DNA from: Bugula neritina
Taxonomy: Eukaryota > Animalia > Bryozoa
DNA: 64,000 bases
Direction of reading: 5' to 3'
NCBI GenBank assembly: GCA_964035545.1
Contig: OZ037768.1
Coordinates: 11,564,741 to 11,628,740, forward strand
The notes under the pieces were generated by a model. The model was not told the DNA's origin. It worked only from the letters and a program-made list of their open reading frames with translations, and ran no database searches. Positions 3,560-33,992 of this stretch are shown here, one piece after another (position 1 is the stretch's first letter; each line of letters begins with the position of its first letter). Position numbers and translations under genes: made by a program.

Positions 3560-4573
3560 CTTCATAAATATACAAATTAGTATATCTGTAGTCTATTTTG
3601 TAAGATTGCATTGTGCATACTATAGGTTTGACTGTTGTTACTGTTAATTACTTATTTTCCCTTTAGTGTATGTGTTTGGTTTAAACATTTACCATAGCTT
3701 TGCATTTTTATAATATTGTGTTGAGTATTAAATGCTTCTTTACCCACTTACCTATTTTCATATTTCAAAACAAATTAAGTCAAATACATCTTTCATAAGG
3801 TGTACTGATTAAATACATGTGTAAATGTTTATATTATAGTAATTTCTATTAATATTGTGATGTCAGAAACTCATCATTATTTGTATCATGTTTTTATATT
3901 ATTATGCTCAATGTTTATAATTAACTCACATTAATTTGTCTATTTACTTACTTTTTACTGATGAATAAGAGCTACATAGTCTAATATTAACTCACATTAT
4001 AATTATTGATTAAAAATATATGTATAATAAACAAAAATGGTACAACATATAATATCTTGTGATACAATAATCTTACAAGTTTTATTCCAGGAGCATGACA
4101 TACATTTATATTGATTATAATTTGGGTTCGTAAATATGTTGAGATGATATATCAATTTTTAGCATGAAGAAGGATAATAATTATTTTGAAGATAAATTTC
4201 ATAAAATGGGTTTGCAATAGTTATTGGGCATGTCTTCTTTTTCATAGACAAGAATAAAAGCGCAGCAAAAATAAAATCAAAATAATTAATTCATCAAAGT
4301 CATTAATATTGAACATGAATAATACAAGTTGAACACCTGTGCAGAGTCTTAGAAGGCATCAGCTACAATTGTCAAATAATTGCATGAATGTTCATACAAT
4401 GTTTTTCCACCAGTTATTTGTCATGTAACAGAACTGTAAGTCAAAAAATTCAAATTTTAGGATGTGTTTCATTGTATTGAAAATATCCCTTATTAACAGC
4501 TGCATACATGTACCATGTTCCAAAAATAATATTCCGGGCATTAGAGTAGTGAAGTTTTCTACTGTTAATTAAT

Positions 4574-5882
4574 CTACACTGACATTTGCATTTCTGTAAG
4601 GTTATTCAAGCAATCAATTTCTCTTGCGCCATCTTCTATAGAGTCACTAATGTGCAGCATTTCACGATAATCTGCCTTTTTTAGAATGTTTTGAATTGCT
4701 TCAACATCTTGTACAGAATACTCCAGCATTATAACTGGGCCAGCTGTTATCTGTAATAAAAAACAAGTGTGAGTGCAGTGTTCTAAAAAACATTGTCACA
4801 CTATGAGATAAAAGTTTAATTTACAAGTTAATAAATTACTGCAACTAACAAAATAATCAAGTATGATAAACTTGACAAAGCAACCTTTAAATTTTTGAAG
4901 TTGTCAAAGTTTAAAATTTATTTTCAGTATTTACATGGTTTTCAAGTTTTAGTTGAAGAATTTAGGTGTTTGACTAATGAGTATTTTATTTATAAGAAAC
5001 GTGAAGCAATGCAGCATAATGATTAAAACTTGCCTGAGGTAAGCAATCAGTCTTTTTAAAAACTCTTTTGGCTTGAGAATCATTCATGGTCATTTCTGCA
5101 GTTTGAACCAAGATGAACTCTTGAAGCATAGCCATAACATTAGTGGCGAGTTGCATCTGATGATTGAAATGGAAAATAGCAATCAAACAGCTATGACCAG
5201 CAGGGCGTTGCTTGCTACCAACTGTATAAGGTATTACACTATTTCTTGCTTCAACAGATACTTCGATAGTGTTGAGTGGCTCAACTGCTGGTAGAGGCAA
5301 GTAATCAGTCAACGAAACTTGCGGTTGGAGAAATGAGCAGTTGTTCTCACCGGGAACTGGTGTAAAATCGTGGATGTTGTTCCAATTATTGTTAAATCTA
5401 CTAATACCAGCTGCTTGGAGATGTTGTTCAAACTGGGGATAAAACATTTTAAGGCATCCAAATTTTACGGCAGTAGTAGACTCGATGATTGGTTGAGTCA
5501 CGCAACATAAAAAAGCAGTTAGCTTTTTACAATCTCTAGTTCTAAATTGCTGGCAAGAAGTGGCTACAACGCAATCAGTGCAATCTCTTACAAATATGCT
5601 GCTTTTTATCGCAGCTATAAATATTCTGCAGTTCACGCAGTCATCAACTGTGACTGTTGCGCAATGATCAAACACATAAATGTCGCAGTTCTCACAATTT
5701 TGTATAATAAACTGTTGTCCATTAATTGATCCTGGCAAGCGTCCAATTGTTTCTCCACTTAGTTTGTCAAGAACAAAGTTTTTTACATCCAACTGTTTTC
5801 TTTTGTCCCATGAAAATTCTTGAGGAGATTCATCTTCAGATAGTTTTGTATGATTAGCCGATTTGCTAAACAGACAACCCAT
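4574..5882 (-). CDS. RP2: Protein XRP2 (ARL3 GAP; TBCC-like domain plus NDK-like domain), 341 aa
   Basis: Exon 1 5882-5034 (MGCLFSK acylation motif, FSWDKR, GQQFIIQNCENC, CQQFRTRDC with the Arg finger, TQPIIES, FNNNWNNIHDFTP). Exon 2 4750-4574 (ITAGPVIMLEY..LTEMQMSV*) matches the RP2 C-terminus. The intron has a GC donor. Confidence 0.96.
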
Positions 5883-6247
5883 TCCAGTTCTATTATTTAT
5901 ACCAGTGTTACTATTATTATTTACTTTGAGTTATACTAGGTATAAATAACTATTAGTATTACTACAATTATAGGTATAACTATTACTATTACTATTAGTC
6001 TATTACCAAGTTCAATGATAATACTGAAATAGTAATAGTATTAGTATTACTACTTTTAAGTATTATTATTATTGAAATATTCAAAATCGGATATTTAAAA
6101 TCAAACGTTTTACTAACGTTTTTAAACACTTATTGCATATCTGTAATTTTAAAGCAATGAGTTAAATAACTCAGTAATTATTAAGTCCCGTAATAGTGAT
6201 GGTTAAAATTGAGTTTTTAGTACAATTTTGAGTAATCAATTATTTAT

Positions 6248-6261
6248 TTTGCCAAAGCAAC
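6248..6261. promoter_or_regulatory. X-box (RFX)-like motif upstream of RP2
   Basis: TTTGCCAAAGCAAC matches GTTGCCATGGCAAC at 11/14 positions, ~370 bp upstream of the RP2 ATG. An E-box/CLEAR-like ATCACGTGAC follows at ~6277-6286. Confidence 0.45.
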
Positions 6262-8179
6262 GCCTAAACAGAGTAAATCACGTGACGTAGATGCGCTCGT
6301 TTCATTAGCTTATACTTTAAACTTAAAGCTGGCAACAATTGACTAGTTGTTATAGCCTTAAACTCTAATAAAAAGCCATTTTAGATTAAATGATCTTTAG
6401 CAACTTCCACGTATAACTTTGAAGAATTTGAATCTTGCACCCGCAAGTTAAAAGTAAATGTACTTAGCTTCCTGGTTTTATGTCCCTTACAGTTTGTAAT
6501 AGTTCTATAAGCAACTCCAAGTTGGTAATGAATAAGTGCAATAGTTTGTTTTCTTGAGTTTAAAGTTGGGGGTTATTGAAAGTCCCAACTTTAAACTTAA
6601 GAACTGCAAACTATTGCACTCTTTCACCACCAAATTGGAGCTGCTTATAAAACCATTCACTTGTTTGAGTTTTCAACATTGGGAAAACGCATTCTTCCCG
6701 ACAACTTTAAGGTTAACTGTGATTACATTTATAATAATATAGTTTACGGTCGGTGTTCTTTACTATATTCATTTTTATTAGCATAAACAAACCTAAAATT
6801 AACGAAATAATATACTTTATTATTTATATGGACGGATAACTAGAAAAAGCAGCAATATTTTCAACACGGTTATTTATTTATTCCTGTCAACTTTAACTTT
6901 AAGTTTAAGTAATACTTTAAATTTAACTAAACCTAATATACAACTATTACTATTAGTATTACTATTAGTATTAGTACTATTATTACCATTAGACTTAACA
7001 TTACTATTAGTATTAGTTTTTTTTAGTACACTAGTGACTATAAGTATTAACTCTGTAAGTATTGCTTATTTGCTATTAATATTACTATTAGTATTAGTAT
7101 TATTAATAGTAATACACTTACACTGACACAACTGAGACAGCAACCAGTATTTTAGCTACAGTCACAGTGATGACATGTTGATATTGGTTTATCTTTACAG
7201 TCATCGTAGCTATAAGTATAACTATAAGTATGCGCTGCTCACATCAGCAGCAACTCATACTCATACTAGCACTAGCAGTGCCAGTAGCTTTCACTTTGCT
7301 AATTACTATTAGCTGTAGAGAATAGTTTATTGTATTCATACAATCAATCGAAACCAGTTCTACTTATACCTTTGAAGTAGAAAAAACTAGTATCAGTTAG
7401 TAACTGAGTTACTAGATATACTGTTTGTATTTGTTTCATAATACCATGATGTTTCAACTTAATTTTATTTTAATTCAGGCCTTCTTCATTTTAAGAAAGC
7501 ATCTATTACTGTTGTGCTATTATTATTGGCTACCACATTGACACTGCTAAAGGAAATTAGCCGTTTCACCATGTAGTGCGTGTAGAAGTTGTATAAATAC
7601 TTGTAACTATAACTATAAACTGTATAAAATTTGCATTTGTATTTTATGTCTCCTACATACAAAATTATAAAAAATTACTCGGTTTTTAATAACAGCAGCA
7701 ATATTATTGTAATATAAAAATAAAACTACCCCACAAATTTTATTATACAGGTTTGCTGGTTAGATCCTTATAATCATATAATCATAAAGCTTATCAAAAG
7801 CATAAAAGCTTTACTTCTTCCGCCTTAATCTAAAATGATAGGCATGACAACATTATTTTTCTTAAATGATTTTAAACCTCCTCCCTATCCGCCTATACAA
7901 ATAGACTTGCCCTGTGTGCTTTTAGTAAGATGATTCTTCAGATTTTTTTATTATCAGTATGACCTGTTATAAATAGAAAATTGTTTCATATTGGTCGAGA
8001 GTTAGTTTAGCAAAGATTTAAACTTCATTGAGAGCCATGTGGTAAAATACAAAAATATCTCGTTTGAAGCTAGTACTTATCATTAGCTACTCTCTGTTTT
8101 ACTTTTGCTATTTATTTTTTGTTGTACATTTACAGAGTGTTTATTGTAATCATTTTGAGACAAATGTAGATGGGTAAAT

Positions 8180-11100
8180 ATGACTTCTAATCAGAATGGC
8201 TCTACAAGCAGGTAAACTTATTTGAATTGTATGTATTTGTAGTGATTATTTATTATTTGATCAAATAAATGCCTTGCCAAACCAAATTTGTAAACAGATA
8301 AACTATCATTAATAATATGGTTTATATATTTTTACCTGTAACTTGGAGTATATGTTTTAGAGTGCCTATTGAGCATTCTATGGCAGAACTTGGACTTCAA
8401 GAGCCATTTAGTTTGCAAAAATATGTCTTAGGTCAAGCTGAAAAGCTGGAATATTACTGGCCTGATTTAACTGCTGATATGGTGAGTAATAACTTTTGTA
8501 TGGTATAAATTTTTATTTAGTTTATGTGGAGATTGAAGTAGTGTACAGTCAAAAATTAAATAAGAAATTCAAACTCTGCCATAAGTAACCAACTCAAAAC
8601 TGTTGGAATATCTATCCATCATATAGTGGCATGGAACCTAGACATTAACAAAAAAGCTAGTTATATCTCTAAAAAAATTTTGCTATGCTATGCCTTGCAA
8701 GACTTTAAGTTAGCTAATGACAGTATTACATAGCATGTTCATATTATTTAAACTTTAGCACATTGCAGCATGGTCATTGGTTGATTAGCTAGTAGCTGCA
8801 AGCATTTAGTTTGCAGTCCAATAGTGATATCAATGCAATAATCAATTCTAAATAAATTTTAGAAAAAAAATGGTTGTACTAATTGCTTGATGGTAAAAAA
8901 GTTTAGTGCAAAAAGCATTTTTGCTACTTCATTTATGGGTAGTATAGTTATTTATGTTTTAACGAAGACTGCACTCTGGGCTTAGAATCAATTTTTGCAG
9001 AAATATAAGTGACTGGTCTAATTATTAGACAGAGTGATTGAAATGCTTTTAGTACAAATCTTATAGCTTTTCAAGTGTAGATTGTGACTAGCATTGTGAC
9101 TAGCAGAAAGTGCAATATTGTAGACACAACATACACTACAAGGTGCTGATGTAAAAAATGGAACATATATACTTAGACCTTCTGGTGCTATGGATGAACA
9201 GAAAAGAAAATTTCTGACTTTGTCAGTCAAAATGAGTTTTCCAAATGAGTGAGTCTCTGGAATGTGTTTATGTACATCTAAAATGCAAAAAGCTAGTTTA
9301 TTTTTATCAATTTAATTAAAATTACAAATTAATCTTTTAAATAATATGTCCATAGTTGTCAGATTTGGCCTTTGTTTAGCATATTTTATGAGTTTTAGTT
9401 ATATTAGTTGTAAATAGCAATTTAATCTTTAGTTTAATTCAACCAGCTTTCGTCTGGTTAGCGTTTATACTAGATATTATGATGAATACAAACTCATGTT
9501 TATGTTTGTAGACTAGTTAGTGTGTGGCACTTTCCAGTGCTGGTGGATGTTGAGAAGAACGAGAAGGGCGAAACCACTCAGGTGTTTTTCTCTCTCACCC
9601 ACAATCACAGTAACATTACTTCTTTAGACAAACTACTCGGCTATTATAGTGGAAGGCCTTTGAGAGGTGAGTCAGTAGCTCATTTGTTTACATGGTGTTC
9701 TGGCAATAAAATATGTCAAGAATTTAGTTCTCAGCAACAGTGATGTACAGTGCTCCCACTTTAGCTCACGGATTCCTTTTCACAAAGTTCCATAGGTAGA
9801 GAGAAGGGCTTGGACCCTCTATTTTTGGCTTATTGTATGTGTGTATAGGAAACAAATGGCCGAATTTAATAGAGTTAAATCTGGTATGCTACCATGTCAC
9901 AAATTGAAGTTTCGGGACAGTAGCTTAGTGAGATACGGAGGGAGCACTGTAGTAGAATAGAATGTATTTTTATATTCTATGAAAATTATTAAACTTCAAA
10001 TATTTTGTCAATATAATAAGCAAAGTTCTAGATGGCAAAACACCTTCCACTGTTACAGCATTTTCATGGTGACGCTTATTGTTTAATAATTTACTTCGAC
10101 AACGATACGTTTCAGCAAACCAGAGTAAATATAAGCGTAGATTACGGTCTTCTTAGTTGTAGTAGTATATTAATATATTATTAAAATGCAACTAATGTCT
10201 CTCTAGTTGTGAAACAAGGTTTATTTGAAATTTGAATATGACAAGATGCATATTGTTGAAAAGTGTTAGAACAGTTTTCACAGTTCAGTTGCACTGTAGC
10301 TATACAGTTTAGGGCTTAGGCAGTGAATATTTTATTTATTTGAGATTTGTCTGCCAAAGTTTTGTGCTATTTTTTCTGTAATTTTGTCCTCTACATTGAA
10401 GAAAACTGAATATCGTGTGCTAAAACCTCACTCCACTCTACAAAAAGATGATTCAACACTGTCTGTACTTTTAGCTGCAGTTGCATTCCAAAAGAATAAC
10501 AGCTGAGCAAATTGGTGCTATTAAGTTTTAAACCACACTGGAGTGTTATTCATTTTATAAAGTATAGTTAAATAACAGAACTATCTTTAAAAATGAATAA
10601 TAATATGAATATATTTGGTTTTTAAATAGAAAAACTAAAATTTAAACTTTGTAGTATAATAATTGTTTGCCTGGTAAGCTACACCATAAACTCCACTACG
10701 AATTTCTTTCTGTTTAAAAGCTAGATGAATACATTTAGGTGCCTCATTGCCTGGAGTATGCTATATAAAAGAGGGTTTGCTGTACCAACAGGAAAAGAAA
10801 AGATCAGCTGTCCACAATGCTGGAACAAGTGTAAGTGTGTAAGGATGTTCTGGAAATGCATAATTTTTATTGTTGAGCGTGTCAATTGTTGATAAATTTG
10901 AAATTGAGTTTTGTCACCGTTTGATTTTTTTTAGGAAACTTACGAGTCTGCTGAATCAAATCATGTAACTACATTCTAACAAATAAAATATCTTTGGTAG
11001 TTGTAGCTTTATTACCTTTAAGCACTTTAGCATCTTTCAACTTTTTCAGTGCAATGCTCCAGTAACATGCAAGCAAGCTACCTTATGTGCCTTATTTTAC

Positions 11101-11485
11101 CAGTACAACTGTTTTCTATGTAAACACCACATTGTAAATGTTGTTAGTAAAAACTGGGGTAAAGTTACCTCAAAAAAATAGGTGAAACTGGTGCATAGAC
11201 TAGATGAATAAGCTTTACTCTTGTACTGGTGCTGCCTGCTCTCATTTCCTATTCATGTGTATTTACCAGCTTGGCTGTCGCCAGTTATTGCAAACCTGTG
11301 TCCCAGCATATCTCTGTTTACATAGTATTGTACTCATTGTTTTTCTTTTGATTATTGCATTTTGATTTTAGATATGGGTTTATAGCCCTCAGATGGTGGG
11401 TAAAAATTGCTAATATATATATAAGATATATAGATATGTATATAATATATATACATATATAATATAAAATATATATAATATAAAG

Positions 11486-11533
<48 letters not shown>

Positions 11534-14500
11534 AAAATATATAATTTTAAGTCATGCTGGCTCTGAATCTCATTGTTCCTGACTTCTGTTAATGTTTTAG
11601 CAACTCACCTAACAATAATTTAGCATGATTGAAGCCCATCTCTAAGATATTTTTATTTAATGCCTAGCGTTGCACTTTATTTGTGATATCTTGTACTTGT
11701 AGCAATATGTCGATCATATTCTAAGTGAGCCACTTCCACCACCACCAGTGCCCTCTCCTCGTGGCACGTTGACCCGGAATGCCAAGTTGGATGATTCAGC
11801 TGCCTCACCTGCTGATGTTATTGTAAATCCTTCCCCAGCCACCCCAAAACCCCGCCCTAGACATTTAACTCAACCCACTCCTGAAGTGCCCCCTAGACCC
11901 ACTGATTTAAATGGTAATGGATTAAACTCAATAGTTGTTTAGTCCTACTCTTTGGCTGTTATAATTTGCCTGATTTGGAACAGTTTGTTTGTTCTGTAGA
12001 TATCTGTCTGTGTTTTATAGATGCCTGTCTATGTTTTATAGAAGTCTTTCTGTGTTTTATAGATCACTGTCTATGTTTTATAGATGTCTCTCTGTTTTAT
12101 AGGCGATGCTAGGCAACCCAGGACTCTCCCTAGACCTCCTGGGGAATCTTCTCTTACTTGCAAATGTGGAATTCCTACCAATGTCACCAGACTCCCTTTC
12201 AAGTAAGTTGACAATTTAAAGAAGTCATCACAAAATTAGTAGTAAAAATGGGCAGTTAGCTACTTGATTACAGTTATACTCATACTTATTAATACATATT
12301 AATAGTTAATTTTTCATTTTTATTTAGTGCAAGTAAAATAAGATTATTATTAATAATATGATTATAGAAAAAAATATTTTGTCAAGAATGTTAAGGCAGC
12401 GAATAGCACAAATACATAATAAAGCTATATAGCAGCGCTTACTGAATTGCCTTAAAATTCTACGAAATGCACAGAAACAGTCAAACTAATAACCTTTAAT
12501 CAGCCAAAGGGCACATACTTTCAGACTTGGTAGAGGTGTGTTGCCAGATGCATAATTAAAAGTATATAATTTAATAATGCTATCACAAATTATGGTCAAA
12601 ACTTAATAAAAACTTGAACAACTATATAAGTTAATTTTTGGTTATCACCATGATATAGCAAAATTTTCAAATTTTCTTAATTTTAAATGGCCATTTTCCA
12701 AATGGGATTTGCAAAATGTTATTACAATAGAAATCAAGGATAGGTAGTAACTATCTCAAACATGCCTTAAAATGTACATAGAAATATGAATAATTTATTT
12801 TACTTGGAACTTGCATATTATGAAAGCTGGGTTGTCTTTCTGGGGCAATTGGAGTAAACTATATAACCTTTTAGCAGGCCTATAGTTTATCTATTAACAT
12901 ATTCACCATCTGAAATAGAAATGTGTCATAGCTCTCTCCATACTTCATATCCATTGTCCTTCATAATAAAGTCTAAAGTATGGGTTATTGTTTAGAATAG
13001 GGAGTTATTGTCTCCTGTAAGCTATAACAAGCCCAACTTGTGATAATTTCTAACAATTCCCATACTTTACTTGAAGGTTTATAGATTGTCTTATCTTACC
13101 ATGCAGAGATCTCTTTTCACATAATGTACAAAACTGGCTGGAATAATGTAGAATGTATCATATGGTTATGTTAATGGTTGTAGCTGGAGTGTTCACAAAT
13201 CTTTACTCCCAGACACTAGAGACATGCTGTACTTCATGAACCCTAAGGGTCAAACCACGTGGGCACCTCCGCCATATATTGACAAAGAATGCAAGAAGAG
13301 AGAGTATTTAGAGTATGGAAAGCTCAACGTTAAAATTTTTGATTTGGTAAGTTGTGTGAAATCATTGGGTCTTCTGCCTCTACATGCTAGCTGGTTGTTA
13401 TCTATTTCAAAGGAGAGCTCAGTTTTGAGAGGATCTCAAGCTCCAAAATATAAGGGAGATGATTTTTTATAGCTGTAGTGGTGAATCAAATTGCCTTCAA
13501 ATTTTCTGTTTGCAGTACAAAAATTATTGCGAGATATTAGATTGCAGACATATTCGCATACGTGTATAGTAGTTATACACCATGATTTTTTTTTTTGTAA
13601 ATAGCCATCTTTTTTATTGTTTGTTATTGTTTGAACATCAGTAAAATTGTGTTATATGTAATATGTGTGGATCTTCTGTATGAAATAAGGATTTATAGTA
13701 ACTATGTCAAGTGTAAATGTCCTGGTTAGCTGAAGCATCTTTAGTATTTCCTATAATACAGCCATCACTAGGCATTCCAGGATTTTTGGTATTCCTGTAA
13801 AACTTTCAGTCTTGATCCAGCCAACTCATTGGTTCTTACCTAGCCAATCATATTGCGCCTGTTACAGTGAGTTATTTTAGTCTGCTGAATACATTATGAA
13901 TCATGAAGTTCTGATCTGATTGACACTTAGGTTTGGCTGGTGATAAGCTCTATTCATCTGTTGCCAGTTTCACTGCCTGTTTTGACTCTGCAGTCTTGCT
14001 TCATTCTAAATTCTTGACAGTTAACACTTGAATCAGATCTTTTTTGTTTCTTCTGCTTTAATAATACATGCAGTTATTTCATACTTTTGTATATCATAAA
14101 CAGTGGGGGGCACATGGAGCATGTTTTGGTAACTGGTAGGGCACACTTTGGTAACATAGCAATTACTTTTTCCTGGTGAATTTTCTCAATTCGGAAATCG
14201 AAATTTTTTTTGCTTCCTTTAAAAAGTGTTGCAACTGTGCTCAATCATGTGTGATACAGTTGTAGGCTACTTGTAGCACCTTCTGTTAAGTGTTATTTTT
14301 TATGTAAGTGACAAAATTCATATAAGATTAGCTTCTGAACTTCTTTAAAGGTTAAAAGGTTCTATAATTAAAGGGATTCATAGGAAATGAATATAATAAC
14401 AGTTGAAATAATGCCTGTAAAAGATGTTCTTTCAGGAATTTTCCAACAAAGTTTTTTGAATAAAGATATAAGTTATGGAATGCAAAGTTTTACTATAATT

Positions 14501-14714
14501 TTCAAAATGTGTCAAATTGCATTTGTACTGTTTTCTCTTACTAATTCATAACTGTTGACCGTGAACAGCTAAGTTGTTACTGTTGAGCTAATCTTTCATC
14601 AATCCACTGTTGTAGTATCGTGATCATTTGAAATATGCAGAAAACAGTGAACTGACCAACTATCGCAAATACCAAACATATACATCAAAGTCTAGCTACT
14701 CTAGCAGATCCTGA
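8180..14714 (+). CDS. Uncharacterised SH2 + proline-rich + WW adaptor protein, paralog A (~365 aa)
   Basis: Exons 8180-8211, 8361-8481, 9124-9248, 9512-9666, 10739-10830, 11703-11913, 12103-12202, 13184-13346, 14616-14714 join in one frame (1098 nt, all GT-AG). SH2 motifs: YYWP..GTYILRPS..FLTLSV..VWHFPV..SLDKLLGYY. WW: LPFNW..LYFMNPKGQTTWAPP. Confidence 0.85.
9748..9949. mobile_element. Tc1/mariner-type MITE
   Basis: TIRs CAGTGCTCCC...GGGAGCACTG with TA on both sides (TA target duplication); lies in an intron of adaptor A. Confidence 0.8.
11412..11542. repeat. (TA)n-rich microsatellite
   Basis: Direct. Confidence 0.9.
11990..12102 (+). repeat. 21-bp minisatellite made of repeated 3' splice-site-like units
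   Basis: Units atgtctgtctgtgttttatag; AGs end at 11999, 12020, 12041, 12062, 12083, 12102. Confidence 0.9.
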
Positions 14715-16005
14715 AATTTATGCTCATATAAAGTTTTTTTTAATAATAACTTTCTGACAAATTCAATTGTATGCTTTATTCATAGTTTTTACCACCAGAT
14801 AATTTATAGCTTTTATACATCTTGCATATTTTATGCACCAGATGCATTTTTTATTATGGGTCTATGGCCTGAGCATGTATTCTTTTTAAGGTTTTCTGGT
14901 TTTTATTTTGTATTTTATGGTTGCTCATAGTTATAATGCAATATATTTTTAGATGCTATAATAATTACTTTGCTGTTTTCTATAACATTTCTGAAAATAT
15001 ATAGACCAGTTCGTGTGTTGCAATATTATGCTAAAATGTTTTTGCATTAAAGAAAAAAATACCTTTGACATTGATTTATTATTGCTAAAAGTTATTTTTT
15101 AGTAAACATGCTCTAAATTTACAATTTGATATCACTAGAGTTGATTACTTAGCAAATTGCACAATTTCTATTTTATTCTGTATGGTTTTTGAAAAGTTAA
15201 AAATAAACTAGCATTATCGCCCCCTCTGTTCCATAACCCCACAATGCATGATTTTCTTCATAATCTTGTCTTATTATTCCATCGATGACAACTCATATTG
15301 GTGTTAGTACTGGTAGGCCTACAACTCTTTTCCTCATTGCCATGCAATAAGTTCTTTTATTTTAGAATCTAATACTTGTTTGAGCTCCCTATACTATCAA
15401 TTCATTTGCTCGATAAAGAACTTTTCATGTCACGTATATCAATTTTCAAATCATGTAAAATGATCTCAACTAGGGACTCCTCTACACACTTATATTGGGC
15501 ATGTAAGAGCATGTCATTCATTTTTACAGGAAAAACTATGTTCACTTTGATTTTCTTTTCTGATATTATTTTTATGTTTATGAAGTTAATTTGATTTATG
15601 TTTCCTGGTTAAAGTTGAAACTCGTGCTGCAAAAGTTGTGAGCACCATAGCAATGCTGGAGACATTACTACTTATCTATACATGGTTTCGCATAGCTGAT
15701 TTGAGAGGCGCACTCATGCTGAATAATGCACGTTAGTGTGTCAAACACTGAGCAAGACAGATGACTTCATTTCATTGGTTCATTTGTTGATGACATCATT
15801 GCTGTGTAAGTCTGTGTATTTGGCTTTTGGTATGCATTTCGTCAATTTTTATGTCCAAGGTGTGTTGAATATTTACTATACTTTCAAATTGACTTAGTTT
15901 GGTTTTTATATATAATAATATATTTAATATAATATAATGTGTCTTGAATTTATAACCTGCATATATAGAATTTAATGGGTAGTTCCTTGATTAACATTAC
16001 ACAGC

Positions 16006-19000
16006 ATGGCCGAATCCAATCTGCAAAGACATGTAATGGAAGAAGCTGCTGAACTGGACTATTTCTGGCCAAACCATGATGCTAGTAAGGTACGTACAAT
16101 ATATACTGTCATAAACCTAATTTCTCTGCCAAATATGCATATTTTTGTACTTGAATTTAGGTTTAAAGTTACTTTCTTATACATAACTTTTCATACTAGA
16201 CATGTATACTAAAGTGCACTTATTTGCTAACAGTTAAAATCTGAAATTACTACCATGAAATAAGATTAACTTATGATGATGTATCTCATTGCTTACTAAT
16301 TCAAATAAAAATGTTTCCTCTGCCAGTTGATGATTATTATGACATTTTACAATCTTTTTTCTAAATATGACTTGCTGAAAGTAACAGTTGAAAGCATTTC
16401 GGGTCAGTAGCTCATAATATGAAGATTATATAGTGTTGGTTAATTATTTCTGGTTTATACAATGTAGATTCAGCAAGTTCTACAAGGTTCTGACATAGAA
16501 AGTGGGACATACATTTTACGGTCATCTGGTTCTGTTGATCCAATCACTAGAAGATTTCTCACTCTTTCTGTTAGAATGGAGTTTGAAAAAGCTCAGTAAG
16601 TGATTTAAAATGCAGCTTCAACAGTTTTGTTAATTCTAAAAGCTGCCTTGTTAGTTCTCATTTATGACTTTCCCATTCATTTCCATTTTGATTTTTGCAT
16701 CAGTTGATAAGTCAATGTTATATTTAAATAATGATTTAAGGCTGGATTAAACATTTTCAAGATGTCATGCAATAGCTGGTGACATAAGAACTTAAGAAGC
16801 GATTTTTCTGGGTTCTATAATATTAATTCTTATATATAGGATATCTGTCTACTACCTGACATTGATTTGTAAACCATTTTTTGAAATAAGTCGTTCTAAG
16901 TACATCTAGTTACTAGAAACAAAAATAGTCAGTTTGACTGTGCTGGGCCTCAAAATGTCTATTTGATCAACTGAGTTCTGTCATTTAAAAATATTAAAGC
17001 TGTAGCAAAGGTGACATAGTCAGCCTATATCTGTTTTGAGCTTAAAAACAACAAAATCATTGCACTTTCATATAGGGTGTTGACTTTTACTGTATTTGAG
17101 TGAGCATTGGCTTGTTTGTGAGTGCAGTTGCCAATTTCTAGTTCCTACTAGCTTAAAATACTACTCATACTATACATACATCTCTGCAGTTAGTTTTACT
17201 GCTGGCAATGCCATAACTTGGCTAGGGTTGTGATTTATTCTTTCAGTCTTGATTGGTAGAAAGAAAAAATATTACATAGGTGCGGTTGGCATTATAGTTG
17301 TTTACGGATAACTTTACACCTTTGATGCTTATTTTAGCATAAATATATTATACATTCTATCCTGCTACCCAAACAGGACAAAGCTGAGATAGGTGTGAAT
17401 GTTATACATCCTATACATATTTTTAGATCTGTTAACGTGTGCCATTTTCCTGTAAAGATAGAGAGAGATGAGAACAATAAAGTAAACTACTCACTAACCA
17501 AAAACTGTCCTTCAATAACATCCCTTGGCCAACTGGCGGAGCATTATCATGGCAAGCAAGTCAAGGGTGAAGTTGTACAAATAACTGTTTAACCGTAATC
17601 AGTAATGCTTTAATGGTGTTTACCCACTTCAAAATTTCCTGGTTTCAGTGTAATTGCTCATTTAAACTGTACCTATGTTATCTCTACACCTTGCAAATTC
17701 CAGGCTTAGTACCAATAAATAGATTAAGCAATCACTTTTGCATTCAAACAACAACTTTTTTCTACCATATGCTATATTTTTATCTTAAAATAAACAAGTA
17801 AAACATTAATTTAATTTTTAACTTAATTATTTCTAGGTAATCACAATAATAATGCTAATTGTTAGAGACATTTCATGAATCTCACTGAAAATGAGAATGA
17901 GTATATGCAAAGTCTTTTCAATCAGTTTTAGCATGGTTTTGACTGTTTGTGTTTTCAATACATAACATTAAAATAAGAATCAACAAATAGTTTGCTTAAG
18001 ATGGATTTTTCTTTCATAATATCTAATAAAACTAATATGCAGCTGATATCAATGCATATTTTATGCCTATTTGTTTATAAGTAATTATAATAGTTGCAAT
18101 AAATTACCTCTGGAACTTGTTTAGTGATAGTCTCATATTGTTTTATTTGCAGGTAAAACAGATAGAGGGGAATGTTCAGCTATGATTAAAAAGGGTCTGT
18201 CTTACCGGAGCTACATGGATAAAGTGGTATACACGCCTACCAACAACAATACTTTGCCTGTACATATACATTCTACTCTCCTTTCTTATAACAAAGTGTT
18301 ATCAATGCTTTTGTATCGTTTGTATAGAGATTACTTCAATGCATGTGTTTGATAGAATCTTTAATGTTTGAGATTAAGTACCTACAGACTGCAGGTATTG
18401 TTCTATATTTTATGTAATGAGATAGTTTACATGTATCTTGTAGTCTACATTCTATACCGCAGGTATGTAATGAGATAGTTTACATGTATCTTGTTTTCTA
18501 TATTCACAGCAAGTGCCGGCTCGGAAAATTTCAGTTGAAAAGAATTCAGCAAAAGTAGCACCCACCCCTCCCCCTCGAGTCACGTTGCCGAAAGGACTGT
18601 CTAACGACACCCTGGTGATTATGGACCCTTCTCCACTCCGCCCTTCTCTTTCAACTGCCCGGCTGTCTGATCGCAATGGGGCAATATATGAAGACAACCC
18701 TTTATTTACATGTGAGTTGAATTTTCAGAATCTAGATTGCTGACATTAACTGTCTTAGCTGGTGGTTAGTGCTCTATAGCAGCAATCTATTTATCAGTCT
18801 CCAATCACAAAATCACTTTGAGGGTATTTCAGTAGAATGTTTAAATTTTGAAGTCATTTATTAAGTCACATGAAATGTAAGATGAGCAATATACTTGCAT
18901 GTACAACATCCACATTTCAAAAACGTTTTGTAAACAAAATTTGTAGTTAATCTATGGTTTTATAAATGTTAGTTTAGTTTACTACAAATAACTGTCCAAT

Positions 19001-21842
19001 GTTTGAGTATTTATTCCTAGCAGCAGAGGAACGATTAAGTACAAACAGCTCAAGTGACATTGCATCTAAAAGCACTTACTGCCGCTGTGGGCTACCTGCC
19101 AGGGTTACTCGTCTACCTGAAAAGTAAGCAGCACTGTCATACTTTTGGTCATGTTAATTCCTAAAACATTATTATTGCATGTATTTTTATATATAGTGAA
19201 CTTTATTAGAAATTTTGAGCAAGCATAATATATTAATTGTTTGTATTTTGATTAAACTACTTTAATTGCAGCATCTAACATTGAAATTATTTTACAACCT
19301 TGTGATAGAAAGGAGTATTTCAACTTGTAACATTATAGAATAATAACAGTGTGGACACTAAGCACCCGTGCAATGTATATACTATATTACATGCATATGA
19401 CAGCCCACCTACATATTTTATAACTAGCATATTGTATTTTCTATATAAGTTATAGCCTTTAATATAAGTTTTCATGTTTTACAAGTTTAGTTATTATATA
19501 TAATAGCAATTATTATATAATATAGCAGTTGGCTGCATTTTCTTGCATGAATCTATATGCTGTGATAAGTACTCTATAGGAAGTGTACGTTTATTGGTTT
19601 TGAACATTTACGGTATAACATCTCGTAATTCTATCAGAGAGCAGTCATGGTCTAGGGGTTCGAGCGCTGACTTAGTAAACACGAAGTCATCGGTTTGAAT
19701 TCTGACAAAGGTCATTGGTGATGTTAAAAAGAGCATTCAGTTATAATTGCTCCTGTACCTCATCTGAATAAGTCCTTAGCCGAGTTAACAAAAGAGCCTT
19801 TTCCATCAGGGATGGTGACTATAAACTTGCATGAGGTCTGGTAATTCTATTCTAACCTATTTGGTTGGTAAATTTAAGCAGAACCTGCACTGTTTTGGAG
19901 TTTCAAACTTGCAACTGTTTTCTATACTTTGGGTAACTATTTGCAATATTGAGAGCTAGTTATTTTAAAAAGAAACACCAATTAAACAGTTTAAGTTCCA
20001 CTTCAAACTAAAATTGTTTCACTTTGTATCATTATTACGTAGCTGTGTAGTTGCTGTAAAGTTTCATCTGGAATATTCTATAGCTGGTCCGTCCACCGTT
20101 CCTCAGAGCAGGATACTCAAGACATGCTCTACTTTAAGGATGCAGAAGGCAGAACTGCGTGGGCTCTTCCCCCTTTTGTAGACAACTTGTGTGAGGAAAG
20201 AGAATATTTGAAATACGGCAGGTTAAATGTTCAATGCTTTAGACAGGTGAGACAACTTCTGTCATTAGACATAATAATGTCTGTTCTCAGCCTAAACCTA
20301 TCGCCAGGCAAGCAGTGTGAATCTAAATGTATGTTCGAAGTGAGCTAAAATCTGGTGCACTGCATGTATTGGTGAACAGTGTTTTCAAGTTTAGTTAAAG
20401 TAAAATAAGCTGCTGTGTTAACTTGGCTGTTGATTAAACTAGTTCTACAAGCCAGATGCAACTGTTGCCCGACGAAGTGAATAATACTTTTGAATATGAT
20501 AGTATGCTGTTATGTCCAACAGCTTCAGATGGTAGATAGTTTCTCCTGGAATACACATTTCTTATAACTTGCACCATAAAAGCACAATGTAGGTTACTTT
20601 TCAGTTAAATAGCTAAACTGACATTGCCTTCACCTAAACTAATGGCTGGTTTTAATGAAAGCATGCTTATAAAAAATGGTGTGAACAAACATATTGACAT
20701 TTGATTACAGCTATACCAGTTTACACATTCATATCTTTCAAGTATCTTCTTAGAAGCTTCTCTAATTTACTCCTTGATGGTGAAAAATTACTTCCTTATC
20801 TAAATGCTGTTATCTAGTAACATTCAGGCCTACTAAATGAGATGATCTTTACGCAGTCTGCAGAACTTATTATTTCTAATTGACGGAAAAGATATTATAT
20901 TCTGCTTTATTCATTATCCATAGCGGAACAGGGTGGTATGATTCCGTCTGTGTGGTCAAAGGTTTTGTAAAATTAAAAAAACATCAGCATTAGAAGCAAA
21001 GTTGTTGTTAAATACACTTTACAAAATTGCATGTTTTAACCACACTGCCTAATATTAGAAGTAAACAACAAAGTGTTTGCAACTAAAATAAATCACAATA
21101 ATAATGAGTGTAAGTTGGGTTACCAAGTACAAGATATATTGACAGCTGGAGTATGATTTCAGTCTATACCACTGCAAGTGGTAAACTCTAACGTAAAGTC
21201 AAATATAATATTGATATTTAAATAGAATATAATTCTCACCTAGCCCGCTCTAGTCCTGCTCTAGTCCTGCACGAGTAGTCGTATCTAAATATAAATTAAC
21301 ATAAAATATAAAACAATATTTACATGATATAATATAATATGTTAATATATTCTTATTATAAATGCAAATGTGTTTCTAGGTTATAACTTAGTCTACTCCT
21401 CATAGTTAAATTATTTTGGTATTACACTGTCAAGAAGTACATGTTCTAGAATGATTGGTTGCCAAGAAGTTTACTCAAAAATCTCACAGCTGTGAGTTGG
21501 CCCAATATATTATGTCTAATCAGTTATTGTGTTAAGTTGGTAGGCGATTGTTAAAGAGAAATGTTCTACTCACCTAGTCAATTCAAACTAGAAGTTGAAC
21601 ACGCTAACACTTTATATTTGACTATAATTATAAGGTTTAATATATTATCTGTAGGGATAGTGATGCCATATATGTGTAGCCATTCATCTCTTATGTTGCA
21701 GTATGGCAAGCATTTGACGTACTCTCCTACCAGTGAACTCTCTCAATTTCATAATTATGAAACCTTCAATTCTGAGCATTTGTCGTTAAAAATAGATGCT
21801 GCTTCTCTATCAACCTGTTGTGGGAAGAAACTCAGACTTTGA
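16006..21842 (+). CDS. Uncharacterised SH2 + proline-rich + WW adaptor protein, paralog B (~355 aa)
   Basis: Exons 16006-16089, 16468-16595, 17427-17566, 18153-18259, 18510-18711, 19021-19123, 20084-20246, 21702-21842 (1068 nt in frame). Intron phases match paralog A and the WW exon is 163 nt in both. Motifs YFWP, GTYILRSS, FLTLSV, VCHFPV, CRCGLP..LPENW..LYFKDAEGRTAWALPP. Confidence 0.85.
19639..19836 (+). mobile_element. tRNA-derived SINE, copy 1
   Basis: A-box-like TGGTCTAGGGG and B-box-like GGTTTGAATTC; body homologous to the copies at 24557-24767 and 57161-57378. Confidence 0.85.
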
Positions 21843-22728
21843 GTGCTAGATTTAGCGTATCTTGTAATTTTCAGTCATAGAAGTATGAGTTTCAGTCAGT
21901 ATTAGTTAGCAGCATGTATACTTAAAATAGCTGTGAAAATGTGTTTTATCAGACTTATTGTCTATAATTTTAAAGTCTTAAAACTGGATTATAGTTTTAA
22001 AGCCTGCAAGATAGTGTTTTAAAAATTATTAATATCAAAACATTATTTTAATCTGTATTTTTGTAAATTAAAATTTCTATTTTAATGCTATTGTAACTAG
22101 GAAAAGCATTTGAAAGAACTGTATTTTTTCAATATTTATTTCTTATTACACAAAATGAATTTATAATTTGAGAAAAATCTAATTTTATAGATGGTAACCC
22201 AAGTTAGTGGGTTTGCAAAGTGATTTTTCAGAAGTTTCAATTGTGTTTTAGTTAGGAATTCTATACAAGCAGCTAGCAATGCGATGTGTGTTTACTAGTG
22301 TTTTTTAAAATAACATCTGATATAAAAACTGTATAAAATATATTTAATAGACAAATAGTTAGTATTCTTTTGGTGTCAATGTTGACAAACTTAGATATTA
22401 CACCAATAACAGGCCTAAAGTTATAATTTAAAGTTTCTGTTTCTTGCATATAAGGTGATCTGGCTATTTGAATGAACATATGCTGAAGTTGTCTTTTCTT
22501 TACCTTAGAATAAATGTGCTCCATCACATGTTATTTGTAAAATAAATAGAAGACAGAAGCAACCTTTGGTAGACTTTAGACCCACTATTTTTTGTAAAAC
22601 AAAGTCAATGAACTTGGCAGGAATTTATTTTTCCAGACAGAAAATGAATTGGTATTCTGGTAATTGAACTCTGACATGTTTAGGCCCGCATCAAAATAAT
22701 AGACTTTTACAGCTAGTTTGAAACATGG

Positions 22729-22729
<1 letters not shown>

Positions 22730-22775
<46 letters not shown>

Positions 22776-22788
22776 AATCTGTGGACAG

Positions 22789-22838
<50 letters not shown>
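22730..22838. repeat. Two (TA)n tracts flanking a short inverted repeat
   Basis: (TA)n - tctcaatctgtggacagatt - (TA)n. Confidence 0.85.
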
Positions 22839-22839
<1 letters not shown>

Positions 22840-23935
22840 CTTTTATACAATAAGTTTTAATTCAGTAGTTTGAAGCTGAACAAAAATTCTATGCTTTAGT
22901 AGCATTGCTACTTGTTGTATATTTACAGCAAATATATTCATGAACTGCCATTAGGTAAATACAAACAAATATGTTTAGCTATTCTTCTCTGTCAGAATCT
23001 GTTTTCTGACATTTTCAAACTTAATTAAATTAATGGCATTATTTATCTCATAAAAGAGTTAATTCTTATGAATATGTTAGTAAAGCCTCAAAACTTTCCA
23101 CCAAATATTAGTTTATTACAACTAGTAAGTTGTTGGAGTTATCCCACTACTAATATATTGCTTTCCAGTATAATCTCTACTTGTCTAGAAAGATTTTCAA
23201 GTTTAGAAAACCAAGATATGATATGAGATACAAATGCCAACTTGTGTGATGTTTGTAATAAAATAGTATTTTATTAAATATATTTTATGATATATAAACA
23301 GCATTTCAGATGTAATAAATATTAGCTTTTACTGAGATTCAATAAAATTGTTTGTATACTGTAAATATAAATAAAATAACCATATTGGGAATAGTCTGCT
23401 CATCAGGTTAAGTTTGATAGTTATTAATATTATTATATTAATGACATAATGGCACTTTTACCTGACAAAGATATAACAGATTACAGAAATTGCCAAATGT
23501 GCTCAATAATGTGTTATATAATCAATATTGGGATAGCGTTCTTCCTCAACGACTGCTTATAACACATTTTTCCTTAAATCTAACAGCATGTTTCAGCTTA
23601 GGTAGTGAAACAATATATATTACATAAATAATAGACTATGACAAAATGAACAGGATTTCATATTAAAAGCTGTTATACAAATTGGAAGCAGTTGGTTCAT
23701 TTGAAATATTATAGTAGCAAAAACATGATGCAATGTTCGTTTTTTTATTAAATTAAAGTCATTTAAGGCCTGTTATTATGCAAACTGACCTTTGTGCCTA
23801 TGATAAGCATGTTTATCTACTTTATAGAATTATTTTCAATAACTGATATCGAAAAATATGAATTAGCCAGTATTTTTTTCAGCAGATATTATAAAGAAGC
23901 TGAATGAAGCAAATCAGCAGACTGCAAACTGGTGG

Positions 23936-26900
23936 TTAAGTTTGATATCGGTTTTCAGGCGCTGGAACTAATGGTTCATATGTTAGGTCTTCATTAAAAA
24001 CAGCAACTTTCTTCCATTCAGACTTCAAGCAATTTCCCCAGAAGGAGCTTTCAGTGCAGTATTCTCTTTCCTCTAAGTTGAAACAGTTCATGCCAATGAT
24101 GTTGAAAAACAGGTGGCCAATTGTATCAGCTAATGGGTCACCATACCTATTTGATGCTTTTTGTAAACACCGGTGTAATCTGCAATAACAAGTGTAGTTC
24201 ACAATAACAACGGCCATATAAACTATTAATGATGAAGTTTTTATTAAAAACAAATAGTATTTAGCAATACTTCTGCAGCATGGCTCAAGTCGAAAAGGGT
24301 GATTCTGTTTACTTCCCAAACTGGAAGATGGCAACAAAACCCATCACATTAATCTTGGTCTCTGTAGATTGATAACTCCGTACTAAAATTTGCCTATAAA
24401 CTTGCTCGTATGATGCAGCACAACTAAATTTTAAAACGACAAAACTAGGAGTGTCAAAGTGCTAAACATCTTTAGTTTGTTACTCTAAAGCCTAAATGAT
24501 AAATTTTATACATTTATATGAAACCCGCATATGATTCTAATTATTCCATTTAATAAAACTCACGAAAGCTTATATAGTCACCATCCCTGTGAGAAAACCC
24601 CTGATGGAAGAAGTTTTCGTTAACGCAGGCTAAGGACTTATCAAAATGAGGTACAGGAGCAAATACGACTGGGTGCTCTTCCTAACATCACCAATGGCCT
24701 TTGTCGGGCTTAAACCCATTACTTCATGCTTACTAGGCAAACACTCTAACCCCTAGACCACGGCAGCTTATTTCATTTAATAACCTACAGCTAAAAGTTG
24801 CCATGTTGGCATACTAGCTAACTAAATGATGAAATAGCTCTGTTGCTATAAACCAATATGTAGGACTCAACTTAAATGCTTATCTTACATACCAGGAAAA
24901 TTTTACTAGAAGAGACAGGCTAATTATTTCAAAATGCCATTATGGACTTTCAGGAAAATATTTTTGAGCAGTAGGAAAAATATGGTCAAAGTCCAAAATA
25001 ATAATTCAGAAATTTTAATTTGTGGAGCTGCAAAATGAATTAGGATTTAATAAATTTGACCTCTAGATTTTAATAATCATTTTTCAGCCTAGTTTATTAT
25101 CTGCTTAAAATACCAAAGGCATTATGATAGAGCTTTGGTATATATTAGGCAGCCTTGGTTTTGAGGTCAGTCCATGCAATGCTTAGCCAAACAGTTTGTA
25201 AAATATGAAGCACCAAGTTTTTAAAATGCTTGTTGCATTCTATATTTTGGATTTACATGCGATTCGGGGTTTAAACTTTCCAGCAAATCTCCACTATAAC
25301 AGTTCCTACTTGACAAGCTGTTTATATATGGTACACTACTCACTTTCTATCACAGGAGCAACTGCTTGCAGTGAGAAGGCCGAAGTTGAAATAGTTATAT
25401 TTAGTTGATAGAGCTGGTATTATATCAGGACAATGATCATGAGCTCTACAGCATCTGTCTGTATACTTGTTTTCTCCCAAGTCGTAGAAATTTTCAGCTG
25501 AATTACCTTTTCCACACCATTTTGTGCCTGTTTATAAAGCCAGGTTTATTATTATGAAGATATTGTATATTTTAATATATTATATTATTATGTTATGTTA
25601 TGTTCTATATATGCTACAACATATAATATTATAGCATATATATAACATATATATAATAGAAGGAGTATTAAAACATGTAAAATATATGTTATATTATTTC
25701 TCTATGCAAAATTTCACCCACTAATACTCTTTGCTAATAAAATAATATAACATTTGCATACTACAATGCAATACAATACAATACAATGCAATACAATACA
25801 ATACAATGCAATACAATTTAATACAACTCAATGCAACTCAAGTGAGCAAGTTGGCTGAACTGCATCTATCAGGAGAAAAATAAAAGGACTGAAAACTTTC
25901 AGCTGTAACTCTCAATTGAGTTTACCATTTTAATAGATGACAGGATAAAATGAAAAACACATTTGATGATGGCAAAAAATTTTATCAAGATTTTGCCAAA
26001 CAATGAAAATAAAGTGACATTGAAAAGACTGAAGTTTTTGGCAGCTTGCAAAGAATTTACATTTGGCAGTGTGCAAAGAATGCTGTCAGTAAAAGGGTTA
26101 TAGCCTGTAGGTAGGGCTGACTTGCTGAAGAAACACAAATACACATCCTTGTTTTGTAGAAGGTTACCTTCTACTAAGAGTTATGTAAATAGAGCACCTC
26201 TTGGTATGCCAAAATAATACCTGGGCACATGCTATCTGTTTTATCACTACATCTTAACAGATAAATCTAGGCTCATTTTAAATGTAGTTCAGATAATCAT
26301 ATAATGAAAAAATAACTAGCAAATTATTCATTGTTTTAAAAATTGCACAACAAGCCACTTGACTTGTAAAAATAGTTACTAAGAGGGGCTTAACTTGTTA
26401 GGATTATTTTCACTAATAAAAACCAAGTTCACTTTTGACCTTGCAGACAATTCAATTTAGAAAGTAGTAATGAGTAGTGATAGAAGAGGTATGTAGTACT
26501 TGTGACATTTCATGATTTGATATTGTCAAAACTTTTACTGTTATACTAGGCAGTATGCTTACTCATATTCTATCAGGTATTTCTACCCCAAGAAGTTGTC
26601 TGTCCTTAAAAACCAAGTAATAATGCACCCCCTAGTCTACACACAAATGCGTAACTAAAAACTACACATACATTTCTGTACCTAATTGTTCTAGCACACA
26701 CAAATTTACTCGAGATACAATCTATGCAGTTTACAGACAGTGTTTGTAAGCTGTCTGTAAACTAAATAAATAAAATTAAGACACTAAAATAGAGTGTCAT
26801 GTAAGCAATCATTCTCCAGGCAGTGCTACTTTTTACAGTTTACAAGGTGCTGGTGTTGGCAAGGGATGCTATTTGTGTTGGAGACAGCCATGTGTTTCTC

Positions 26901-32900: not shown

Positions 32901-33992
32901 TTAACTGGAGTTACAGTAACCACAAACTCTCCTAGCTCTCTACCACTCTCAGACACCGTCACTAGCTCATCAGAGAATAATAAGTTTTCAAAGTCACTGG
33001 GAACTAAAACGGAAATACATAGCTGTCCAATAACTGAGTGCATAATAATCTGCGGAACTTGTTTTACAATTTCTTATTGTAATTTACATGACTTAATCTA
33101 AACACAATTTCAGTTTGGTAAAGTAAAAACTCAGTGTTTGTAGCTAATCTTAAGTTGAAGCACTTTGAAAATAATGTCATTCATTAGAAAATTAAGTCCT
33201 AAAGGTACAATGTAGTTACTGAATATAAATTTTAAAGGGACATTTAATAAAATCAAAAAACTAAAAAAAGAAACTATTTGATTAATTAAATACAAAGACA
33301 CTTACTGACTGTTTCAATAAACTGAAGAGCTTCTTCTGAAGGTTTAGGATACTCAACAGGGTTAATGGGCAATGGTGCATCGGTTGTGAGATGGCTTATG
33401 TCACTAAATAAGCAAGAATAAATTGAGAACTTTTTCAAAAAAATATTAGAAAACAGAACAAATCTACAAATATGTTACTATTAGAATTGTTCTACACGAC
33501 AAGCTGTACATTGGGGTTAGAAGATAATTGTTAGAGCATTAGTTAAATAATAGAATTGGTAGTCTATATCGAGTCATTATATAAATATGCAAAATATAAT
33601 TGTATATTACAGGTAGCTTATATAGTTAATTACATAATGCCTATTATAACTTATATTATGCACAATTTTTTTCTCATAAAATGCTTTTTAAAAAATTATA
33701 TAGCCACTGTTATGTATTAATCATACTATCAGTATAAAATCTTAGAAAAATTTACAATAAGGTTAATAAAATTCCAAATTTACTTAAAGTAATTTAGTAC
33801 TAGTAATATGTGTAGTAATTTTTCAAAACTATTATAATTAGCATGAGTATTAGTAATAGTAATAGTAAGACCAATTGTATTAGTTTTGAAAAAGTCGACT
33901 CATTTTTTCTATAAGTTATTTTTAAAAAAGACATTGAGTTTATTGATTTACCTGGATGCTGTGTGAGGGTGCTGTGCACTTAATGCTGCCAT
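29974..33992 (-). CDS. CATIP: Ciliogenesis-associated TTC17-interacting protein, 393 aa
   Basis: Exons 33992-33952, 33403-33306, 33003-32762, 32499-32248, 31622-31498, 31318-31242, 30773-30685, 30231-29974 join in frame (1182 nt). Motifs LFSDELVTVSESGRELGEF, HANSQGTIDGVPCGT, GFISEGSNLLLLRLL, GHLTSRVQVGSP, WEEDVQL, and the C-terminal HPELNAILADFLQFLLLRKPED docking domain. Confidence 0.93.
30888..31195. repeat. Degenerate ~12-bp minisatellite (TACTCTATAATA)n
   Basis: Direct; lies in a CATIP intron and explains ORFs 30887..31114 and 31055..31237. Confidence 0.85.

Follow-up and report, generated by a model that had tools for sequence, protein, structure and literature searches.

In the genome of the bryozoan Bugula neritina, two adjoining paralogous genes on the plus strand, here called gene A and gene B, encode predicted proteins with an N-terminal SH2 domain and a C-terminal WW domain. 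The genes were analyzed within a stretch of 64,000 nucleotides (GenBank assembly GCA_964035545.1, contig OZ037768.1, positions 11,564,741 to 11,628,740 of the forward strand), which is referred to as the window and to which coordinates belong if not stated otherwise. Position 8180 is the ATG in the short first exon of gene A and position 21842 the end of the stop codon of gene B. We consider it probable (about 0.75) that A and B are expressed-type, selectively maintained tandem paralogues which encode cytosolic adaptors of an unnamed SH2/CxCG-WW family, found also in the bryozoan Watersipora and, judged by its motifs, in a sea star.

The gene models were built from stop-to-stop frames, inspection of splice sites, a tblastn comparison of A with B and tblastn with the Watersipora orthologue. 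Exons were joined by script solely for counting length and stops. All searches were run with single exons, the Watersipora protein (P0002) served as a proxy for the full-length protein, and alignments were made domain by domain. For gene A, nine coding exons with 1095 nt plus the stop codon are predicted, which encode 365 amino acids (aa) without internal stops. Gene B consists of eight coding exons and encodes 343-355 aa, depending on which of three donors of exon 3b is used. All three donors are in frame, and by length arithmetic only the one at 18259 (exon of 107 nt) fits the 346-aa GenBank model described below. Exon 3b of gene A was included because without it exons 3 and 4 would not be in frame, and the length of the 279-aa GenBank model is matched exactly only if this exon is counted. 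The N-terminus encoded by exon 0 of gene A is conserved with the Watersipora protein (QN..R.P[VI]EH[ST]M) and has the same start as the GenBank model. Every intron of both genes is of the GT-AG type. The similarity between A and B exons is far above chance, with tblastn E-values (E) of 1e-13 (exon 2) and 2e-22 (WW exon).

An initial annotation, made from the sequence alone, had described two adjacent multi-exon genes with identical intron phases, and this was confirmed: the seven shared introns have the phases 0,2,1,0,1,2,0 in both genes. The Asn of the motif (N)WSVH is in both cases a codon split by the phase-2 intron. All motifs that were quoted at that time are present, namely GTYILR, VWHFPV/VCHFPV, PLPPPPVPSPR, PEVPPRP, PTPPPR, IYED, the CxCG lead-ins, both Trp residues of the WW domain and the Tyr-rich last exon. 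The proposed architecture of SH2 domain, proline-rich linker, CxCG lead-in, WW domain and Tyr tail is borne out by profile matches to SH2 and WW. No further domain was detectable by Pfam on the exons or on the Watersipora orthologue. The features of the locus are listed in Table 1.

Table 1. Genes, exons and neighbouring features of the A-B locus (window coordinates).
Feature	Position	Strand	Content and evidence
Gene A	8180-14714	+	
A exon 0	8180-8211	+	ATG, MTSNQNGSTS, then split Arg codon; GTAAAC donor
A exon 1	8361-8481	+	SH2 start (YYWPDLTADM; beta-A, start of alpha-A; Ala at alpha-A2); tblastn with P0002 E 6e-9, hhalign register
A exon 2	9124-9248	+	SH2 end of alpha-A, beta-B (GTYILRPS, beta-B5 Arg), beta-C; 60% identity to B exon 2
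A exon 3	9512-9666	+	SH2 beta-D (VWHFPV, beta-D4 His) to alpha-B (SLDKLLGYY); PDB profile and hhalign
A exon 3b	10739-10830	+	SH2 end (ASLPGVC), linker start; matches Watersipora GGLPSIC
A exon 4	11703-11913	+	Proline-rich linker, 18 Pro in 70 aa; PLPPPPVPSPR, PEVPPRP
A exon 5	12103-12202	+	RTLPRPP motif, CKCGIP..VTRLPF lead-in; equivalent Watersipora residues modelled with high confidence (pLDDT)
A exon 6	13184-13346	+	WW core (WSVHKS...MLYFMNP...TTWAPP) and helical extension (IDKEC..REYLEYGKLN)
A exon 7	14616-14714	+	Tyr-rich tail (6 Tyr in 32 aa), stop
Gene B	16006-21842	+	
B exon 1	16006-16089	+	Start codon, SH2 start (DYFWPNHDASK); GenBank 346-aa model begins here
B exon 2	16468-16595	+	SH2 beta-B (GTYILRSS), beta-C
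B exon 3	17427-17566	+	SH2 beta-D (VCHFPV) to alpha-B
B exon 3b	18153-18259	+	SH2 end (KTDRGEC..GLSY); acceptor certain, donor uncertain (18223, 18226 or 18259)
B exon 4	18510-18711	+	Proline-rich linker (PTPPPR, IYEDNP)
B exon 5	19021-19123	+	CRCGLP..VTRLPE lead-in
B exon 6	20084-20246	+	WW core and helical extension
B exon 7	21702-21842	+	Tyr-containing tail, stop
TBCC/RP2-like gene	4986-5882	-	Upstream of A; single-exon open reading frame, 298 aa; Pfam TBCC E 1.7e-42
Phospholipase A2 exon	23936-24337	-	Pfam E 1.4e-5
CATIP exon	32663-33043	-	Pfam CATIP_N E 1.1e-32

In a second assembly of B. neritina, GCA_010799875.2, gene models were predicted by AUGUSTUS with transcriptome hints (PMC7576161). 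On its contig VXIV02003351.1 (locus L029), three models of 279, 73 and 346 aa lie over the region of A and B. The 279-aa model corresponds exactly to exons 0 to 5 of gene A, with the donor of exon 5 being read through into a TAA. The 73-aa model (KAF6017906.1, P0001) corresponds to exons 6 and 7 and is 98% identical to the window translation, so the join of these two exons is present in a GenBank protein. The 346-aa model corresponds to gene B. The public draft splits gene A and lists the SH2 half and the WW half as two separate hypothetical proteins. The RefSeq model of Watersipora joins the exons which correspond to exons 5 and 6 of gene A. The locus described here corrects the annotation of gene A in the public draft.

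For assignment of the N-terminal domain, several profile methods were applied. A family profile compared with PDB sequences matched SH2 domains in 9 of 9 cases, among them PLC-gamma2 (E 0.018), GRAP2 and Fyn, and the matches are in register on beta-D to alpha-B. A PDB search with the Watersipora orthologue as a single sequence gave nothing useful, and a short profile of SH2 exon 2 retrieved only chance peptides from PDB. As a reference, an alignment of 18 canonical SH2 exons from the same genome was used in hhalign. The profile of exon 2 was matched at 56% (P 1.1e-4), with YWPD...GTYILRPS...LSV lying on WxG..R..AE..L..GxFLVRxS..LSV. For the profile of exon 3, the match was at 32% (P 4.7e-4), with VWHFPV...SL..LL.YY on V.H..I...F.SL..LV.HY. 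Unrelated control pairs gave P 0.39. The protein-language-model neighbours of the domain are all SH2 clusters. Because two independent hhalign matches are collinear and correctly ordered and agree with the PDB profile and the language-model neighbours, the SH2 homology, as judged from the sequence, is convincing. A, B and Watersipora all retain the beta-B5 Arg (in YILR), the beta-B7 Ser and the beta-D4 His.

The C-terminal module was compared in the same way. Most of the 24 matches of the module profile in PDB are WW domains, with PinA as the best (E 0.0033), followed by Su(dx), SMURF1/2, Itch, YAP, NEDD4 and Ess1. Against true WW repeats, hhalign gave 93% (P 3.5e-7) over the whole WW domain, and still 83% (P 8.4e-6) with the bryozoan sequences alone. 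The pattern W...(M)LYF...T-x-W-A-x-P occurs in A, B and all bryozoan relatives, and the two Trp residues are 25 residues apart. In the AlphaFold model of Watersipora residues 278-347, the predicted local distance difference test score (pLDDT) reaches 83-94 over the lead-in, the three strands and the three short helices; the Tyr tail is modelled as disordered. A Foldseek search with this model returned nothing significant. An exhaustive structural aligner placed the WW domain of TCERG1 at the top (Z 3.3) and listed at least 11 WW domains, and the model superposes on the WW domains of FBP11 and Pin1 at 1.3-1.4 Å over 29 residues. In the ESM Atlas shape search, WW-containing clusters were among the matches. 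The core is thus a WW domain with a long loop 1, and in the model it sits in a larger ordered unit of which the CxCG lead-in is a part. The lead-in and the helices following the WW domain are predicted to form one compact module with it, which is in line with the earlier suggestion of an extended WW fold.

The WW exon and both SH2 exons occur in two copies each in the 216.0-Mb, 321-contig genome, and all of them are located at the A-B locus. This fits the duplication claimed before: A and B are tandem paralogues and the only two copies. Recent duplication was considered and rejected, since the WW exons of A and B are only 56% identical and the foreign sequence to which A is closer is not the one to which B is closer. 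When the WW exon was used as query in an exhaustive phmmer search, 11 proteins were matched. The only full-length one is the "uncharacterized protein" of Watersipora subatra (XP_067932688.1/XP_067932687.1, P0002/P0013; 376/383 aa), which is an orthologue over the full length. It can be aligned in collinear order with each exon of A and B (30-60% identity), from the N-terminal exon through the CxCG lead-in and the WW domain to the Tyr tail. In Watersipora the linker is longer and a single locus is present as far as the databases show, whereas Bugula has a tandem pair. Further matches are fragments of open reading frames (ORFs). A 5.9-kb contig from a third species (L003) carries exons 3, 3b, 4, 5 and 6 in the same order. 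A 433-aa eukaryote ORF (P0010; ENA ERZ26052378) contains the second half of an SH2 domain and, after it, a tandem of two CxCG-WW modules; the second Trp has been lost from the first of these. The contigs of P0010 and P0014 from the same dataset are 1.8 and 2.9 Mb long. Word-indexed protein searches returned the query sequences only, and the sea-star protein XP_038061760 was not among their matches. A metagenome scan gave nothing new beyond three copies of a species already seen.

In addition, selection on the two genes was analyzed. The window (4463-24183) was compared with the GenBank contig L029 and two contigs of the Joint Genome Institute (JGI; L027 and L028). The identity is about 88-90% with many indels, and the introns are diverged by about 10-12%. 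It follows from this divergence that the window and the GenBank/JGI contigs stem from different lineages within the B. neritina species complex. Exon-by-exon Nei-Gojobori counts between the window and the L029/JGI lineage gave a synonymous divergence (dS) of about 0.115 in both A and B. The ratio of non-synonymous to synonymous divergence (dN/dS) is 0.21 for A and 0.35 for B, so that both are under purifying selection, which is strongest in the domain exons. In the WW exons dN/dS is about 0.05-0.12, with about 0.05 and a single amino-acid change in 54 codons in the WW exon of B. The SH2 exons show 4-5.5 non-synonymous differences (Nd) over about 275-295 non-synonymous sites. For the linker exon, dN/dS is about 0.3 in A and about 1.1 in B. 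The linker had been called fast-evolving in the initial annotation, and the per-domain values agree with this, most clearly for the linker exon of B. From the exon-wise dN/dS it can be concluded that both genes are maintained, their domains being constrained and the linker free to change. The last exon of B (21702-21842, compared with L029 19021-19178) carries a 20-nt indel between the lineages; the C-terminal ends differ and the proteins are about 355 and 346 aa long.

The neighbourhood of the pair contains a TBCC/RP2-like gene, a phospholipase A2 exon and a CATIP exon (Table 1). The latter two appear to belong to ordinary neighbouring genes. The order TBCC - A - B - phospholipase A2 is the same in L029. 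For a role in immunity or allorecognition, which had been suggested before, no support was seen in the neighbours or in any domain, and such a context was rejected. The GC content is about 32% across the window and the composition is ordinary. The TBCC/RP2-like ORF begins with MGCLFSK, a probable N-terminal acylation motif. In the intron that precedes the WW exon of B, a segment of about 180 bp (about 19650-19830, plus strand; L029 16455-16635) matches positions 24581-24762 on the minus strand in inverted orientation at about 86% identity and is probably a small dispersed repeat.

Several results weigh against the reading of A and B as SH2/WW adaptor genes. The Pfam SH2 model (PF00017) gave no match on any exon at E ≤ 10, and for the full-length orthologue from Watersipora none at E ≤ 1. 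A six-frame scan of the genome with this model found 60 SH2 pieces, none of them at the A-B locus. On P0010 the same model reached 12.5 bits (E 0.16). Likewise, the Pfam WW model (PF00397) showed no match on the exons or on P0002, and P0010 stayed below the threshold with 20.9 bits versus a cut-off of 26.9. Pfam thus misses both domains which are supported by the profile methods. In A, B and Watersipora, Ala stands at alpha-A2 in place of the alpha-A Arg, whose absence had already been noted. AlphaFold models the SH2 region poorly (mean pLDDT 48.6), and Foldseek found no significant match with this model, the SH2 domains of Grb7 and Hck being among the matches at E > 1. Structure prediction accordingly yields a confident, WW-like model for the C-terminal module and little for the SH2 domain, with no significant Foldseek match for either. 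Loop 1 of the WW domain is 2-4 residues longer than usual (two extra residues relative to the reference repeats in hhalign), and the structural Z scores of the WW module are all ≤ 3.3. Low Z values are expected for a domain as small as WW. Finally, the GenBank draft leaves exons 5 and 6 of gene A unjoined (L029 3791-8499 and 10001-11503).

These points lead to different explanations. The N-terminal domain might be a degenerate "pseudo-SH2" which does not read phosphotyrosine, so that the proteins would act through the WW domain and linear motifs only. The silence of Pfam on the exons, the Watersipora orthologue and the locus, the lost alpha-A2 Arg and the low AlphaFold confidence would fit such a loss. 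Moreover, the sea-star relative has a canonical SH2 domain recognized by CDD, so the bryozoan SH2 must have diverged much. However, A, B and Watersipora show no variation at the beta-B5 Arg, beta-B7 Ser and beta-D4 His, and the SH2 exons have the few amino-acid changes between lineages given above. It is also known that SH2 domains without the alpha-A2 Arg can still bind phosphotyrosine. We regard a degenerate domain as unlikely. Decay of gene B towards a pseudogene is very unlikely: its frame is intact with GT-AG at all splice sites, its dN/dS is 0.35 overall, falling to about 0.05 for the WW exon, none of the key residues of SH2 and WW has been lost, and the annotation of GCA_010799875.2 has it as a full protein of 346 aa. 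Such a decay would explain why B is more divergent from Watersipora than A (e.g., 31% versus 56% identity in SH2 exon 3), why its linker evolves neutrally, why its C-terminus differs between lineages through the 20-nt indel and why the donor of exon 3b is weak.

Another explanation concerns the C-terminal module. It could mainly be a zinc-stabilized structural or dimerization domain built on a WW-like sheet instead of a binder of proline motifs; Cys-x-Cys, the W-x-V-H histidine and a Cys/His further on would be its ligands. C-x-C-G and this His were found in every sequence seen, including the bryozoans, both repeats of P0010 and, by eye, the sea star. The lead-in is modelled as ordered, and the bryozoans share a fourth, invariant Cys (ID..C). 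Outside the bryozoans, however, this fourth ligand lies in a different column. In addition, the binding face of the WW domain is kept (Y/F in beta-2, T-x-W, W-x-x-P), which argues for retained ligand binding. A mainly structural role is possible if doubtful.

Taken together, we favour an adaptor function of both proteins. The SH2 domain, with its beta-B5 Arg, beta-B7 Ser and beta-D4 His, would bind to an activated receptor or scaffold at a phosphotyrosine. The linker motifs PxPPPR and RxLPRPP could recruit SH3 proteins. The WW domain, in which the aromatic pair of beta-2, Thr-x-Trp and Trp-x-x-Pro are kept, would bind a proline-containing partner, which is possibly phosphorylated. The tyrosine pattern of the tail is conserved (Y....Y...SEL..Y..Y.T[YF]). 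The tail is a likely kinase substrate and could bring in other SH2 proteins or fold back onto the SH2 domain of the same protein.

The closest relatives of the WW module among the profile matches are the group IV WW domains of Pin1, Ess1 and PinA. W-x-V-basic-x-S in beta-1/loop 1 and Y-F-x-N-P in beta-2 are shared with them. In contrast, the Bugula WW domain has a longer loop 1, no rotamase domain, an added CxCG lead-in and a helical extension of about 25 residues. As the conserved W-x-V-H-[RK]-S and Y-F-x-N-P fit the Pin1/Ess1 class, the ligand may be phospho-Ser/Thr-Pro. To our knowledge, a WW lead-in with Cys-x-Cys has been described by nobody so far. Tentatively, and with considerable doubt, it can be proposed that C-x-C-G, the His of W-x-V-H and the downstream Cys/His form a zinc site, which would staple the N-terminal arm and the C-terminal helical hairpin onto the WW sheet. 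This would define an ancient, unrecognized "zinc-capped WW" subclass, always paired with SH2, from echinoderms to bryozoans. If true, phospho-Ser/Thr-Pro may be what such a domain recognizes, and signals of tyrosine phosphorylation would in this way be coupled to those of serine/threonine phosphorylation.

A protein consisting only of SH2 and WW was already reported from Patiria miniata, a sea star. Its egg transcript GGEY02085024.1 (XP_038061760) encodes 317 aa and was confirmed by reverse transcription PCR and sequencing (PMC11593052, Cells 2024). An Acanthaster match and an amphioxus protein of look-alike architecture were named alongside it. The sea-star protein is uncharacterized; the authors suggest that it bridges tyrosine and serine/threonine phosphorylation signalling (PMC11593052). 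In our full-text literature search this was the one paper found on such a protein. The initial annotation had assumed an undescribed, lineage-restricted family. The former does not hold in view of the sea-star report. The latter is contradicted by the Acanthaster and amphioxus proteins (PMC11593052), by the sea-star lead-in as read by eye and by P0010 with its two modules. The sea-star and Bugula proteins both have only an N-terminal SH2 and a C-terminal WW domain, are of similar size (317 versus 343-365 aa) and contain a proline-rich stretch in between. Supplementary Figure S1 of the sea-star study was translated by hand from machine-read text, in which errors are possible, and shows K-K-C-T-C-G-L before the WW domain, W-M-M-H, G-R-V-F-F-V-N and Q-W-E-L-P-E. 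Judged by eye, this lead-in and framework are those of the P0010 repeats and the bryozoan proteins. Because they are shared, the Bugula genes likely belong to a family spread across Bilateria. The SH2 domains differ: that of the sea star is canonical (GSFLLRDS type) and recognized by CDD, whereas the bryozoan one escapes Pfam.

As far as we know, the pairing of SH2 and WW is rare and absent from the well-studied vertebrate adaptor set. Noted once before, in sea-star eggs and without a function, it also exists in Lophotrochozoa. Since the bryozoan SH2 is too divergent for standard domain models, SH2 censuses of invertebrates may under-count. The findings are modestly novel in two respects, the Pfam-invisible SH2 domain and the deeply conserved Cys-capped extension of the WW domain. 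For now, the practical value of the locus is that of a defined target for binding and structure experiments. Adaptors of the Grb2, GRAP2 (Gads) and Nck type are likewise small and non-catalytic and combine SH2 with modules that bind proline motifs, and the SH2 domains of GRAP2 and Fyn were among the PDB matches. However, these adaptors use SH3 where the Bugula proteins use WW; there is no sequence orthology, and the Bugula SH2 is not scored by Pfam. Genes A and B are new tandem members of the rare SH2/WW adaptor family already noted in the sea star.

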